Source of the DNA: Macrostomum lignano
Lineage: Eukaryota
Assembly: GCA_002269645.1 (NCBI GenBank)
Contig: NIVC01001463.1
Location: 186,001-250,000, forward strand
Length of the DNA: 64,000 nucleotides
Direction: 5' to 3'
This document shows, piece after piece, positions 56,997 to 63,895 of the stretch (within the stretch, counting starts at the first letter, position 1; the number at the start of each line of letters is the position of its first letter). The position numbers were made by a program, and so were the translations under genes. The notes beneath the pieces are model-generated. The model did not search any database. It worked only from the letters and a program-made list of their open reading frames with translations, and was not told the origin of the DNA.

Positions 56997-58088
56997 ATGG
57001 CAGATAGCCTTGTACTGCCCGCAACTAACAAAGCGCTACGAGAAGCCCTTAGTGAGCGCGGCCTGCCTACTAATGGCAATAAGCAAGAGCTAACAAGTCG
57101 TCTAAAACTCAGCATTGCCAAGGAGCTTGAGCGGCAGGCGTTGGAGCAGGACAGAGGCTCATCTCGTCGTGCTCAAGATGACAAGACATCACCGACGAAT
57201 GCGGGCGCACCCGAGCTAAGTCTGGCTCCACCTGAGGACGAGATGCTACCGGCGGTGGGCGCCTTGGCCGAGGGTCGGGCGGCGACGGGAGGCGGTCTCG
57301 AGGATCAGCTGCGAGAGACTGAACTGCGCATTCGGCTGCTGGACCTGAAAAAAAGAGAGGCTCAGCTCGAAGCCGAGCTCGCTGAAGCGCGTCACAGTGG
57401 CACGGCGGCTGCGAGAGAACGTGATCAGACTCCCGGTGAGTGGCATGATTTGGTTGGCGAGTGTATACTCGGGCAGGCTGGGGCTGCAATTTCGCATGCT
57501 CAGGCGCCGGCGGTGTACAGAGTCGTTGATTTTATCAGTGAGCGTAAGCGGAGACAAGGAAGCCAGTCTGTTGTGGGAGCGGCAAAGCCAGAGAGGTTGA
57601 AACACGTCAGTCCCGAGTCACTGTCGTTTGGCGATTTCATCTCCGGTAGCTGTAACTTACTGGTGCAAATGCTGCGTGATGGCAAACTGCTGCACATTGT
57701 TGATGGCAGAATCGATTCATCCGAGTTGATCGATCATCTCCGACATAACGCTAGAATTGGTGACCTGCTAGATTTAGGCTTCGATCGCATTAAAGTCATG
57801 AGATATGATGACGAATGTCGGCTTCTCCAGCATGATGGAACGCGGTGGAGCGCTGTTAGCGCAGACCTGGGTCTGGTGGCAACACACTTGATGGCACCGA
57901 CAAAAATGATAAATGCAACAGCGCCTAGAAAGCGAACGCAGCCACCTGTCTGTTTCGACTTCAACAGTCTTAGCGGCTGCAACAGAACTCACTGCCGCTT
58001 CGCCCATCAGTGCCGCAGGTGCTCACAGCCGCACTCTGAAGCCCGAGCCCACGCTGATGGGGACCCGGGCCAACTTTCAAAAAACTAG
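56997..58088 (+). CDS. Element 1 Gag-like ORF1: SAP domain, coiled coil, C-terminal CCCH/CCHH zinc fingers
   Basis: NKALREALSERGLPTNGNKQELTSRL (SAP pattern L+..L..RGL...G.K..L..RL); CFDFNSLSGCNRTHCRFAHQCRRCSQPH. Confidence 0.85.
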   Translation: MADSLVLPATNKALREALSERGLPTNGNKQELTSRLKLSIAKELERQALEQDRGSSRRAQDDKTSPTNAGAPELSLAPPEDEMLPAVGALAEGRAATGGGLEDQLRETELRIRLLDLKKREAQLEAELAEARHSGTAAARERDQTPGEWHDLVGECILGQAGAAISHAQAPAVYRVVDFISERKRRQGSQSVVGAAKPERLKHVSPESLSFGDFISGSCNLLVQMLRDGKLLHIVDGRIDSSELIDHLRHNARIGDLLDLGFDRIKVMRYDDECRLLQHDGTRWSAVSADLGLVATHLMAPTKMINATAPRKRTQPPVCFDFNSLSGCNRTHCRFAHQCRRCSQPHSEARAHADGDPGQLSKN

Positions 58089-59971
58089 CGTGCGAGGTGG
58101 GGGCACAGGACTCAATGTCTGCCGCCGGGTCACCCTCCTGTGCCCCCACGGGGGAGCTCTGACCCGAGTTCAACTGAGTTGTCGAGCGACCTTGTGTTTG
58201 CGGTTTGGCGGGAAGAGCTGGCTGGGACCGAGATGCCGGAGGACCGTGTCAGGTTTGTGCTCGATGGTGTGAAGAATGGCTTTCGAATTACTAATAAAGT
58301 TATGGATTGTAAGAACCACACTGAGATGGCAAATCACAGATCAGCTACCATTCACCAGCAAGCTGTTGAGGCCCAGGTGCGCCAGGAGCTCAAGCAGGAC
58401 CGCTACAGGCGCTGCCAGACAGGCAACCGGCCGCTCATCGTTAGTGCACTTGGTGCGATCCCTAAGGCGGATTCGTCTTCCATCCGCCTTATTCACGACT
58501 GCAGCCTGCCAACTGGCGCCTCTGTGAATGATTTCTTTGAGTCGAAACGGAAGTTGCGTTTTACTTCGGCCAGCAACTTTGCCTCGAAGCTGTACAGCGG
58601 CGCGTACATGTGCAAAGTGGATCTGTCGCAAGCATATCGTTCATGTGGTGTGCACCCTGATGACCACCGGGTCACAGGCATGAAGATTCAGCTCCAAGGC
58701 GAGGGCCAGCCAGTGTACCTGTACGACACGTTTGGTGCTTCGGCTTCCGTATTCTGCTTTTACGAGCTGAGCCAAGCTGTGCGTTTTATGATGTTGAAGC
58801 ATGGTTTCTACGCTATGGAGGCCTACATGGATGACTTCGCCTTTTGTGGAGATCTGGAGTCCTGCTGGAAGTTCTACAACCTTCTCATCGATCTGCTCGA
58901 GCGGCTAGGCTTCACCGTAGCAAGTGTGTTCCGCCGACAACGCGGATGACCTTTCTGGGCATTTTATTTGATAGCGTGGCAGGCCAGATGTCTCTTCCTG
59001 CCGAAAAAGTCCAAGACTTGTTGCATGTTTTATCCCTCTGCTCTTCGAAGAAAAGGCTGTCAAAGTCGTGTTTGCAGAAGTTGATCGGCAAGTTAAACTG
59101 GGCGTCGCAAGTTGTTCGGCACGGGAGAGTTTTCCTCCGACCTCTTATCGACATTGTTAACAAGCTGCATCGGCCTCATGACAGGGTTCTTGTTAGTCCC
59201 TCCGTGGTGCACCAACTCTCCTGGTGGCGGTTGGCTTTGCAACATCGCATCGGTGTTGACCTGTGGACTTCGCCGAGGGCTTGTGTTGCCATAGAGACTG
59301 ACTCGTCGTCTTCAGGCGCCGCGGCGGTGCTCCGTGATGGTGATGGGATTCGTGATTGGTGCTTTATTGACTGGCAGATCGACGCAAATGGTGTTTTTCA
59401 GAATTACTGCATCAATTACAAGGAGGCTGTGGTTATATTGCTGGCTGTTTTGAGATGGGGCCAATCCTTGGCTGGTTGTCGGCTTGCTGTGTACTGCGAC
59501 AATGAGACGGCGTGTTGGATTCTAAGGCGAGGTGTCTCCAAGGACTCGCGTCTGATGTGGTTGCTGCAGTCTGTGGCGTTGCTCTGTCTGCGTTTTGACG
59601 TTGAATTTGAGGTCTTTCACGTTCCTGGTGCCTATCAGCTGTTTGCTGATGCAGGGTCCCGCCTGCACTCGCGTCATGAGTTGCTTAACTTTATTTTCCG
59701 TGTTTACGGGTCTGTGCCAGTTTGTCCTGTGGAGTTTTCGAATCACGCGTTTTCTGTTTTTGCCTCCCGTTTTTTATTTTCACAGGCCGCCTCCCTGCAA
59801 CGCCGACCCTCGGCGCCGCCGCCTCCAGCCTCCTCGCCGCAGCATACGCACCGCAGTCACGCAGGGCGATCTCATCGGCCGTCCGGTCCTGGCACAGCTT
59901 CTGCAACGAGAACGGGACCAACCCGGCTCGATCCGACCGGTCGGTGCTACTCAACTACCTGGCTCACCTAG
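58089..59971 (+). pseudogene. Element 1 reverse transcriptase + RNase H with a frameshift near 58920 and an apparent 3-codon loss in the LPFG motif
   Basis: RLIHDCS, KVDLSQAYR, YDT-FGASAS (vs DTRLPFGARAS in element 2), YMDD, LIGKLNWA; RNase H IETDSS, INYKEA, YCDN and ADAGSR lie in a different frame. Confidence 0.85.
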
Positions 59972-62138: not shown

Positions 62139-63895
62139 ATCTTTTTTATAGCCGCCCTGCTTTTAACCCCCGTTCGCCTTTACCTTTTATCTTGCCTCCA
62201 TCTGCTCATTGCCCTGCTCGCACCCTGCTCTCTCCACCGCGCCGCGCTCTGTCGTCCGACATGAACCTTGCCGCCTGGGAGCCGCTGCTTCTGGGTGACC
62301 AAGACGAAGATTTTCTTCGCAGCGGCCTTAGCTACGGCTTTCGGCTCATCAATAGATCGCCGCCTTTTCTTGCCCGCTCCGCCAACTACCGATCGGCCTT
62401 GGACCAAGCCAAGCAGGTTGGTGAACAGCTCGCCAAGGAGCTCCGTCTCGGCCGCTTGCAGCTCGCCAATGGCCCTGTCATGGTGAACGCCATCGGGGCG
62501 ATTCCAAAATCTGACGGCAGTGTCCGGGTCATTCATGACCTTTCTAGACCTTCGGGGTCCTCCGTCAACGACAGCTATGAGCAGGAAAAGGGGCTGCGCT
62601 TCGCCTCTGTCCAAGACCTGACCCGCTATCTTCGCCCAAACTCGTTTATCGGCAAAATCGACCTCAAGCAGGCCTATCGTTCCGTCGGTATTCACCCTGA
62701 CGACCAGGTGCTCACGGGCCTCAGCTGGCGGTTCTCTGCCGACAGCGATGACTCGGTGCTCGTTGACACTCGGTTGCCCTTTGGTGCTCGAGCGTCATGT
62801 GAGATTTTCCATCGCTTATCGGCCTGCATCAAGCGCCACATGTTCAGCATTGGCTTCACAGCTACCGTCAACTACTTGGACGACTGGGCAGTCGCCGGTG
62901 ATACTGAAGAAGCGGCTCAGGAGGCCTTCAATTATCTGGTTGATCTGCTGCAGAACTTAGGCTTCGACATCAACTGGCAGAAGACCGTGGCTCCAGCTCA
63001 ACACGTTGTGTTTCTCGGCGTGCTGGTTGACACTGTGAACGGCACCCTGTCACTTCCAAGCAACAAGAAAGACGACATTCGGAAACTGCTGAACGATTGC
63101 CTGTCATGTGACGTTGTTAAACTGAAGCAGCTCGAAAAACTGGCCGGTAAGTTGTGCTGGCTCAGCCAGATCAACAGGCTGTTGCGTCCTTTCCTGCGCC
63201 CGCTCTTCGACATCCTCAGCTGCAGAATGGACACCCGGCTGCCATCTGAGCTTCGCAACCTCTTCCTCTGGTGGCTGCGCGTCGTGAGTTCTCTGCCGCC
63301 GACGGTCATTCGCCCCCGTTTTCGTCAACTTGTGGCCATCGAATCTGATAGCAGTTGCGAGGGTGCTGCTGGCATCGTCTTTGGCAGCGAATTCAGTGAC
63401 TGGACGTACTTCAGCTGGGAGAAGGACTTTGAGAGCAAGTTCCGCGACCTTCACATCAACCACAAGGAGGCGCTGGCTCCGCTGCTTACCATCCTGCGCT
63501 TCCGCGAGCAGCTTAGGAACAGCCGCGTGGTGATTTACTCGGACAGCACTGCTGCCGTCGGCATGGTCAATAAGCTTTCCTGTCGGCATCCTCTGCTCAT
63601 TCGCATCTATCAGACCGTTGCTCTCGTGTGCCTCACGTCGGGAATTCAGCTCCAGGCGTTCCACCTTCCTGGCCAGATGCAGCTGCTGAGCGACTCCGCT
63701 TCTAGAATGGGGGGCTCGAGCAGAGAGCTCATTAATTTTTGCTGCCGTCTTTACGGCTCTTTATGCATTTGTCCTTTCGAATTTGCTTCCCACACCATTT
63801 CTGCCGTGTCTCGCACCGCTCTTCATTCGCAGGTCGCAGCCGCGCTCCGCTCCGCTCCACCGTGTCTGTGTCCGCTCTGTGCCGCCTGTCACTAG
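62129..63895 (+). CDS. Element 2 reverse transcriptase + RNase H (ORF2), open from the A-AAA-AAC heptamer in the -1 frame of gag
   Basis: RVIHDLS, KIDLKQAYR, RLPFGARAS, YLDD, LAGKLCWL; RNase H IESDSS, INHKEA, YSDS and SDSASR; no stop between 62129 and 63893. Confidence 0.9.
   Translation, partial: KKLDLFYSRPAFNPRSPLPFILPPSAHCPARTLLSPPRRALSSDMNLAAWEPLLLGDQDEDFLRSGLSYGFRLINRSPPFLARSANYRSALDQAKQVGEQLAKELRLGRLQLANGPVMVNAIGAIPKSDGSVRVIHDLSRPSGSSVNDSYEQEKGLRFASVQDLTRYLRPNSFIGKIDLKQAYRSVGIHPDDQVLTGLSWRFSADSDDSVLVDTRLPFGARASCEIFHRLSACIKRHMFSIGFTATVNYLDDWAVAGDTEEAAQEAFNYLVDLLQNLGFDINWQKTVAPAQHVVFLGVLVDTVNGTLSLPSNKKDDIRKLLNDCLSCDVVKLKQLEKLAGKLCWLSQINRLLRPFLRPLFDILSCRMDTRLPSELRNLFLWWLRVVSSLPPTVIRPRFRQLVAIESDSSCEGAAGIVFGSEFSDWTYFSWEKDFESKFRDLHINHKEALAPLLTILRFREQLRNSRVVIYSDSTAAVGMVNKLSCRHPLLIRIYQTVALVCLTSGIQLQAFHLPGQMQLLSDSASRMGGSSRELINFCCRLYGSLCICPFEFASHTISAVSRTALHSQVAAALRSAPPCLCPLCAACH

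Follow-up and report, generated by a model that had tools for sequence, protein, structure and literature searches.

A conserved gag-to-recombinase splice route in Ngaro-type retrotransposons of Macrostomum lignano and its relatives in other animals, predicted from sequence

The 64,000-nucleotide (nt) stretch of the Macrostomum lignano genome analysed here, called the window below (contig NIVC01001463.1, positions 186,001 to 250,000), contains two Ngaro-type tyrosine-recombinase (YR) retrotransposons, elements 1 and 2, on the forward strand. Their genes lie in the order gag, reverse transcriptase (RT)/RNase H (the pol gene), and YR. The two are highly divergent, as the original prediction for this locus had it: their gags are 26% and their RTs 38-40% identical. 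In each element, a splice donor in gag and an acceptor at the head of YR are so placed that splicing would put the N-terminal part of Gag in frame with the recombinase. Compatible-phase sites are conserved across eight elements, including elements from a flatworm, a mollusc, a cephalochordate, a tardigrade and a reptile. Based on these sequence comparisons, the recombinase is very probably translated from a subgenomic mRNA that arises by splicing, and would be a chimera of the Gag N-terminus and YR.

Element 1 is a dead copy, with a frameshift in pol, an odd frame relation between gag and pol, and a YR that has lost its C-terminus. The frameshift is a single one inside the RT, and the pieces of pol are stop-free. 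The N-terminal part of pol is in the gag frame, where element 2 and a third element described below (L001) have the -1 frame. The YR consists of the core-binding domain and the catalytic domain as far as the H-x-x-R box; it is shortened at the 3' end and is without about 39 C-terminal residues found in UniProt A0A1I8G0Z6, an M. lignano protein whose gag part is 96% identical to that of element 1. Element 2 starts a few hundred bases past the cut end of element 1 (56997-60657 vs 60658-64000), and the two are thus nested or in tandem. There are no further copies of either in the 64-kb window. Exact-protein matches for the two window gags were not found, and a homologue search with the gag alignment gave no scored match, with candidates probably swamped by low-complexity words. 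A scan of metagenomes with gag returned one partial locus from which the N-terminus is absent.

By their gene order, both elements are of the type of Ngaro, a group of the DIRS order that is described as having gag, RT/RNase H and YR and no methyltransferase (Goodwin & Poulter 2004, as cited in PMC9210276 and PMC3783388). They have this gene order, their pol open reading frame (ORF) ends at YR, and Pfam finds SAP, RVT_1 and RT_RNaseH domains in them and no methyltransferase domain. Homologues of the YR were found; the Pfam family Phage_integrase matches relatives only, below its cut-off. From the R-H-R-Y set of the recombinase, element 1 keeps the H-x-x-R box and ends ahead of the Tyr region, and another genomic copy (P0001) and L001 continue through that region. 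Split direct repeats were not seen in the window, in which the 3' end of element 1 is cut off and element 2 runs out of the sequence. Relatives from amphioxus (L010) and a tardigrade (L011) have such repeats in the Ngaro arrangement A1...B1-A2-B2, 100% identical. An assignment to the DIRS1-like or PAT-like elements, which carry a methyltransferase domain downstream of RNase H and have inverted terminal repeats together with an internal complementary region, was rejected, with no methyltransferase domain and no inverted terminal repeats found. The overlap of YR with pol is also shared with Ngaro, whose YR ORF is described as frameshifted and overlapping pol (PMC3783388). The Ngaro accounts, as they are summarised in these sources, mention no intron, no Gag-YR fusion and no SAP domain in Gag.

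The proposed splice sites of elements 1 and 2 have the features of spliceosomal GT-AG introns (Table 1). The donors (GTGAGT and GTGAGC) and the acceptors (a pyrimidine-rich tract and CAG) match the cis-splice motifs of M. lignano, GT[G/A]AG and CAG (PMC8629364). Both donors are phase 1, since exon 1 consists of 146 codons plus 1 nt in element 1 and of 119 codons plus 1 nt in element 2. At both acceptors, 2 nt remain ahead of the next YR codon, so that the joins G/GC and G/GT restore a Gly codon and the YR frame continues. The original prediction had placed all four sites at exactly these positions and in this phase, and had specified the Gly codon and the 146 or 119 amino acids (aa) of Gag in frame with YR; sequence reading and joining of the exons gave the same result. 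GTRAG occurs four times in the gag of element 1, with GTGAGT at the proposed donor only, and in the gag of element 2 it occurs only at the proposed donor. Phase-1 GTRAG dicodons make up 0.3-0.4% of the codon pairs in the elements, and about 4% of elements are therefore expected to have one within five codons of the aligned site. Ranked against all 20-nt windows of its own element, the pyrimidine tract of element 1 is in the top 0.6% and that of element 2 in the top 7%. It had also been proposed that neither YR ORF has an ATG upstream. This is so for element 1, in which the first in-frame ATG is 108 codons downstream, but not for element 2, which has one in-frame ATG 23 codons 5' of the junction, within the overlap with RT. 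Element 1 also contains a 28-nt inverted repeat (75% complementary), with one arm about 160 nt 5' of the donor (57251-57278) and the other just 3' of the acceptor (59803-59830). Pairing of the arms could draw donor and acceptor close to each other, but the repeat may also be due to chance.

Table 1. Features of the two window elements and of related elements. Window positions are given unless a contig is named; a slash marks a proposed exon boundary. pLDDT, predicted local distance difference test.
Element	Feature	Position	Strand	Details
Element 1	Donor CCG/GTGAGT	57433..57441	+	Phase 1 (codons GGT GAG); exon end 57435
Element 1	Proposed exon 1	56997..57435	+	146 codons + 1 nt; sequence reading, join
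Element 1	Proposed intron	57436..59785	+	2350 nt; gag C-terminal part and RT/RNase H
Element 1	Acceptor TTTTTTATTTTCACAG/GC	59766..59787	+	Pyrimidine tract (17/20) + CAG/GC; phase 1; AG 59784-85
Element 1	Proposed exon 2, YR	59786..60657	+	Joined reading frame, homologues
Element 2	Donor AAG/GTGAGC	61429..61437	+	Phase 1 (codons GGT GAG); exon end 61431
Element 2	Proposed exon 1	61074..61431	+	119 codons + 1 nt; gag ATG at 61074
Element 2	Proposed intron	61432..63832	+	2401 nt
Element 2	Acceptor CTCTTCATTCGCAG/GT	63813..63834	+	Pyrimidine tract (15/20) + CAG/GT; phase 1; AG 63831-32
Element 2	Proposed exon 2, YR start	63833..64000	+	Leaves window after 55 codons; joined frame
Element 1	gag ORF, 363 aa, intact	56997..58088	+	ORF list; gag ATG at 56997
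Element 1	pol (RT/RNase H), broken	58089..59971	+	ORF list, Pfam, comparison with relatives
Element 2	gag ORF, 354 aa from ATG, intact	61074..62138	+	ORF list, sequence reading
Element 2	pol frame (RT/RNase H), open throughout	62033..63895	+	ORF list, Pfam
Element 1	SAP domain, aa 10-37	57024..57107	+	Pfam PF02037, 30.1 bits; helices 11-20 and 29-60 at pLDDT 81-89
Element 1	Long helix, aa 100-141, putative coiled coil	57294..57419	+	AlphaFold2: single helix, pLDDT 76-90
Element 2	SAP domain, aa 6-39	61089..61190	+	Pfam PF02037, 39.1 bits
Element 1	A AAA AAC heptamer, gag end	58079..58085	+	Candidate gag-pol -1 frameshift site
Element 2	A AAA AAC heptamer, gag end	62129..62135	+	pol in -1 frame
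L001	A AAA AAC heptamer, gag end	1257-1263 (contig)
Element 1	T TTT TTA heptamer, RT zero frame	59770..59776	+	Element 1 only; absent in element 2 and L001
L001	Donor CCT/GTGAGT; acceptor CCTTTCTCCATTTTCAG/GT			Donor after codon 124; both phase 1
L013	Donor AAG/GTAAGA; acceptor TTTCATCTGTTTTTCAG/AT			Donor after codon 151; join in frame
Scallop LOC110460989 (three identical loci)	Donor CAG/GTGAGA; acceptor TTGATTTGCAG/AT			Exon 1, 133 codons
Amphioxus LOC118404542 isoform X1	Donor CAG/GTAAGA; acceptor GTTTATTTCAG/CC			Exon 1, 312 codons
Tardigrade XP_055356622.1	Donor CAG/GTAATG; acceptor CCCGTTTTCAG/AT			Exon 1, 113 codons
Gecko XP_048338292.1 (degenerate copy)	Donor CTA/GTGAGT; acceptor TTTCTGGCTCAG/CA			Exon 1, 54 codons

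The same pair of sites is present in other flatworm-type elements. L001, a 4177-bp Logan contig, holds a complete third element of this type, with a YR that is 51% identical and a gag with a SAP domain. Its joined codon is TGT (Cys) instead of Gly; thus, GTGAG is kept although the amino acid differs. The first 30 nt of L001 (1-30) recur at its end (4148-4177); the contig may have been assembled as a circle or in tandem, or a terminal repeat may have been collapsed. When the three flatworm-type gags are aligned, the donors are at most 2 residues apart, in a linker of low conservation that separates the long helix from the conserved C-terminal domain of Gag. In two metagenome contigs, L003 and L004, the acceptor has the same position and phase. 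Pairwise identity without gaps changes at the acceptor: the RT frame has 35-38% upstream and drops to 24% and then 11% downstream, and the YR frame has 13-21% upstream and climbs to 32% downstream. Stops interrupt the YR frame upstream of the acceptor at 10 codons in L001 and at 17 codons in L004. L013, an unannotated Logan contig picked blind by length alone, again has a donor and an acceptor that join gag to YR in frame.

Searches with the joined proteins also returned YR proteins with N-terminal extensions from more distant animals. For four RefSeq models the locus DNA was retrieved, and two exons sufficed to rebuild the protein exactly; in the case of scallop, the two exons were placed by tblastn at 100% identity and the junction was read from the sequence. 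In all four, the gag ORF is open through the donor and an intron of 2.3-2.7 kb holds the RT. Exon 1 of amphioxus is unusually long because of a 147-nt tandem duplication (L010 6643-6936) that ends at the donor. Every element that has a gag (8/8: elements 1 and 2, L001, L013, scallop, amphioxus, tardigrade and gecko) has phase-1 sites, an NGT-RAN donor within the linker of gag, an acceptor made up of a pyrimidine tract and CAG a few codons 5' of the YR core-binding domain, and an intron of 2.3-2.8 kb that contains the C-terminal part of gag and RT/RNase H. The donor codon is GGT in five plus L013, AGT once and TGT once (Gly, Ser and Cys), and the codon after it is GAG, AAG or AAT. The original prediction had taken the shared position and phase in the two window elements as a sign of selection and had asked that conservation be sought in relatives and other taxa; the phase-1 pairs in all eight elements agree with it on both counts.

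Gene models from M. lignano give a mixed picture. A HMMER scan of 1.84 billion representatives, with a profile built from the two window fusions, found the M. lignano protein A0A1I8J2F9 as a single match stretch across the junction (E = 5e-46). This protein reads ...SSQ/GRSRAP..., which is the predicted join, and shares 65% identity with the element 2 fusion across the junction. A0A1I8J2F9 is a gene model, and since other M. lignano models join the pieces in other ways, we give it little weight as support for the splice. The model P0001 uses the same acceptor with other donors, skipping the gag stop and the broken pol; we rejected it as splice evidence and regard it as a predictor's workaround. 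Several models (P0064, P0096, P0001 and P0071) are chimeric, with Ngaro pieces fused to one another or to host genes, and two such models that include the YR region are named methionine synthase and PH domain-containing protein. We take these chimeric models to be annotation artefacts.

The Gag part that would be joined to YR contains recognizable modules in the flatworm lineage. The SAP domain scores above the Pfam cut-off (the gathering score of PF02037, 23.9 bits) in the three flatworm-type gags (30.1, 39.1 and 35.1 bits) and in A0A1I8J2F9. As in other SAP-domain proteins, the motif is helix-extended-helix; here it heads a retrotransposon Gag and, once spliced, would head a recombinase. The element 1 fusion was modelled with AlphaFold2 from a shallow alignment; the model has a mean pLDDT of 59.5 and shows in order the SAP helices, disorder, the helix of residues 100-141, a disordered junction and, at moderate confidence, a helical bundle. 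Because the junction is disordered and lies between the long helix and the bundle, the splice would join modules within a linker. Pfam finds no SAP domain in exon 1 of the non-flatworm relatives, and tethering to chromatin by SAP is therefore not the conserved reason for the fusion. What exon 1 has in common in all lineages appears to be a charged helical segment, judged by eye in the non-flatworm elements. The fusion of a SAP-containing Gag segment to YR that had been proposed is supported, but a chromatin tether as its conserved role is not. We suspect that, through the shared N-terminal helix, the recombinase can multimerise or assemble together with Gag, much as RT does by way of Gag-Pol, and that SAP may add DNA or chromatin binding, and perhaps tethering to chromatin, in the flatworm lineage only.

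Other ways of producing the recombinase need to be weighed against splicing. A -1 ribosomal frameshift out of the RT/RNase H frame would give a Pol-YR fusion, and the "pyrimidine tract" of element 1 would then be a slippery site. The three flatworm elements do all have YR in frame -1 with respect to pol, a T TTT TTA heptamer is in the RT zero frame of element 1, and the literature calls the YR ORF frameshifted and overlapping (PMC3783388). However, no X XXY YYZ heptamer occurs anywhere in the overlap of element 2 or L001. Upstream of the acceptor, the YR frame is open for just 10 codons in L001 and for 2-6 codons in scallop, tardigrade and gecko, and in scallop the pol stop is 36 nt 5' of the acceptor. 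The gag-pol boundary illustrates how a conserved heptamer looks in this family: A AAA AAC, which looks like a conserved gag-pol frameshift site, is strictly kept immediately ahead of the gag stop in 3/3 flatworm-type elements. We consider a frameshift into YR to be highly improbable. It is also doubtful, and in our view quite unlikely, that YR has a start of its own, whether on a separate or spliced-leader (SL) trans-spliced transcript that begins at the acceptor, at an in-frame leader ATG, or by reinitiation after the pol stop. The acceptor resembles the trans-splice acceptors of M. lignano (PMC8629364), scallop has an ATG 14 codons downstream of it, and there are in-frame ATGs upstream of it in element 2 (-23), L003 (-22), L004 (-11) and L013 (-11). 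In L013 this ATG, 11 codons 5' of the acceptor, overlaps the pol stop (ATGGTAA, 3273-3279), and reinitiation may coexist with the splice in some lineages. Such an ATG is absent, however, from element 1, L001, scallop, amphioxus, tardigrade and gecko (6 vs 4 with), and a start at YR leaves the conserved phase-1 donor in gag unexplained. The M. lignano SL ends in ATG (PMC8629364); joined to a phase-1 acceptor, this ATG would be read in the frame of RT, and this bears out the earlier argument that the acceptor phase excludes initiation from an in-frame leader AUG.

There is also very little chance that no splicing occurs and that the sites merely reflect coding constraint, on Gly-Glu in gag and on Ser-Gln in the RT tail, and have been exploited by gene predictors. 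In favor of this view, the RT frame reads CAG as a conserved Gln codon, and the M. lignano gene models around the elements are visibly arbitrary. However, the GT of the donor is kept while the encoded amino acid changes, as does the codon that follows; the donor is in a linker that is itself poorly conserved; the background rate of suitable dicodons is low (given above); and phase 1 is found in 8/8 elements across the five host lineages. Similarly, the RT-frame residues just ahead of the acceptor CAG vary (Ser, Phe, Leu) while their codons remain pyrimidine-rich. Some observations do weigh against the spliced chimera. The gag-YR splice is predicted here from DNA and from gene models, those of RefSeq included. 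The acceptor CAG doubles as a Gln codon in the conserved RT tail, and part of its conservation may therefore be coding. Four elements have the in-frame ATGs shortly 5' of the acceptor, L002, the sole further Logan contig, is collinear with the unspliced element, and other M. lignano models (P0001, P0071, P0096 and P0114) join the same pieces otherwise, so that the M. lignano models alone prove nothing.

On balance we favor the conserved, spliced Gag-YR fusion made from a subgenomic mRNA, as put forward in the original prediction and backed by every comparative test run. We infer that the splice is used in vivo. We postulate that unspliced RNA encodes Gag and, through a -1 frameshift at A AAA AAC, Gag-Pol. 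A fraction of the RNA would be cis-spliced from the phase-1 donor in the disordered linker after the N-terminal module of Gag to the phase-1 acceptor a few codons 5' of the YR core-binding domain. Splicing would take out the C-terminal part of gag and RT/RNase H, and the subgenomic mRNA would start at the gag AUG and encode the Gag N-terminus (SAP and the long helix in flatworms) and then YR. We also lean towards the view that the phase-1 intron is ancient, a shared and selected feature of animal Ngaro elements, and that the active recombinase is always a chimera with an N-terminal Gag multimerisation module. The Gag module could then be the recombinase's ticket into the Gag/RNA complex, and lineage-specific DNA-binding additions such as SAP could ride on the same exon.

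Retroviruses make env from a spliced subgenomic mRNA, and in avian leukosis/sarcoma virus env borrows the AUG and first codons of gag. The Pol of foamy viruses is also made from a spliced mRNA. The route proposed here likewise would use a 5'-proximal donor and an acceptor ahead of the downstream gene, would reuse the gag AUG, and would leave unspliced RNA as genome and gag/pol message. In contrast to retroviral env, the downstream gene encodes the integration enzyme, and the element is not of the long terminal repeat type. Moreover, whereas the retroviral protein borrows a few codons, the Gag part here comprises a whole folded module, with 113-312 residues in intact elements and 54 in the gecko copy, which is degenerate. 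There is also a likeness to the Gag-Pol -1 frameshift, which attaches an enzyme to a Gag part and is apparently used by the same elements for RT/RNase H. The two differ in that the heptamer is not conserved at the RT-to-YR overlap and that the fusion of Gag to YR would take place at the level of RNA.

The remainder of the window is rich in tandem arrays (27 rows in Tandem Repeats Finder). Minisatellite arrays with 40-nt and 20-nt units lie directly 5' of element 1 (55326-56112 and 56629-56828), a 2.6-kb array of 23-nt units is at 14987-17556, and a GACA run is at 8689-9625. The sole Rfam match in the window is a tRNA-Lys (CTT) gene at 22221-22293.

The open literature that we searched on YR elements and Ngaro contains no description of a splice within a YR retrotransposon; the founding Ngaro paper (Goodwin & Poulter 2004) and the 2015 review (Poulter & Butler) are outside the scope of that search. 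Within that literature, the original statement that such a splice had not been described for Ngaro or DIRS elements holds. Several RefSeq "uncharacterized proteins" would be the Gag-YR fusion product, and a conserved gag-to-YR splice, if true, would give annotators a rule for separating Gag-YR fusions from host genes. Accessible published accounts leave open how elements of the DIRS order express a recombinase ORF that lacks a start codon and overlaps pol, and for Ngaro elements the splice would answer this question. If so, YR retrotransposons would use subgenomic splicing in the style of retroviruses, and their enzyme would be redefined as a Gag-YR chimera, with a bearing on both packaging and targeting.

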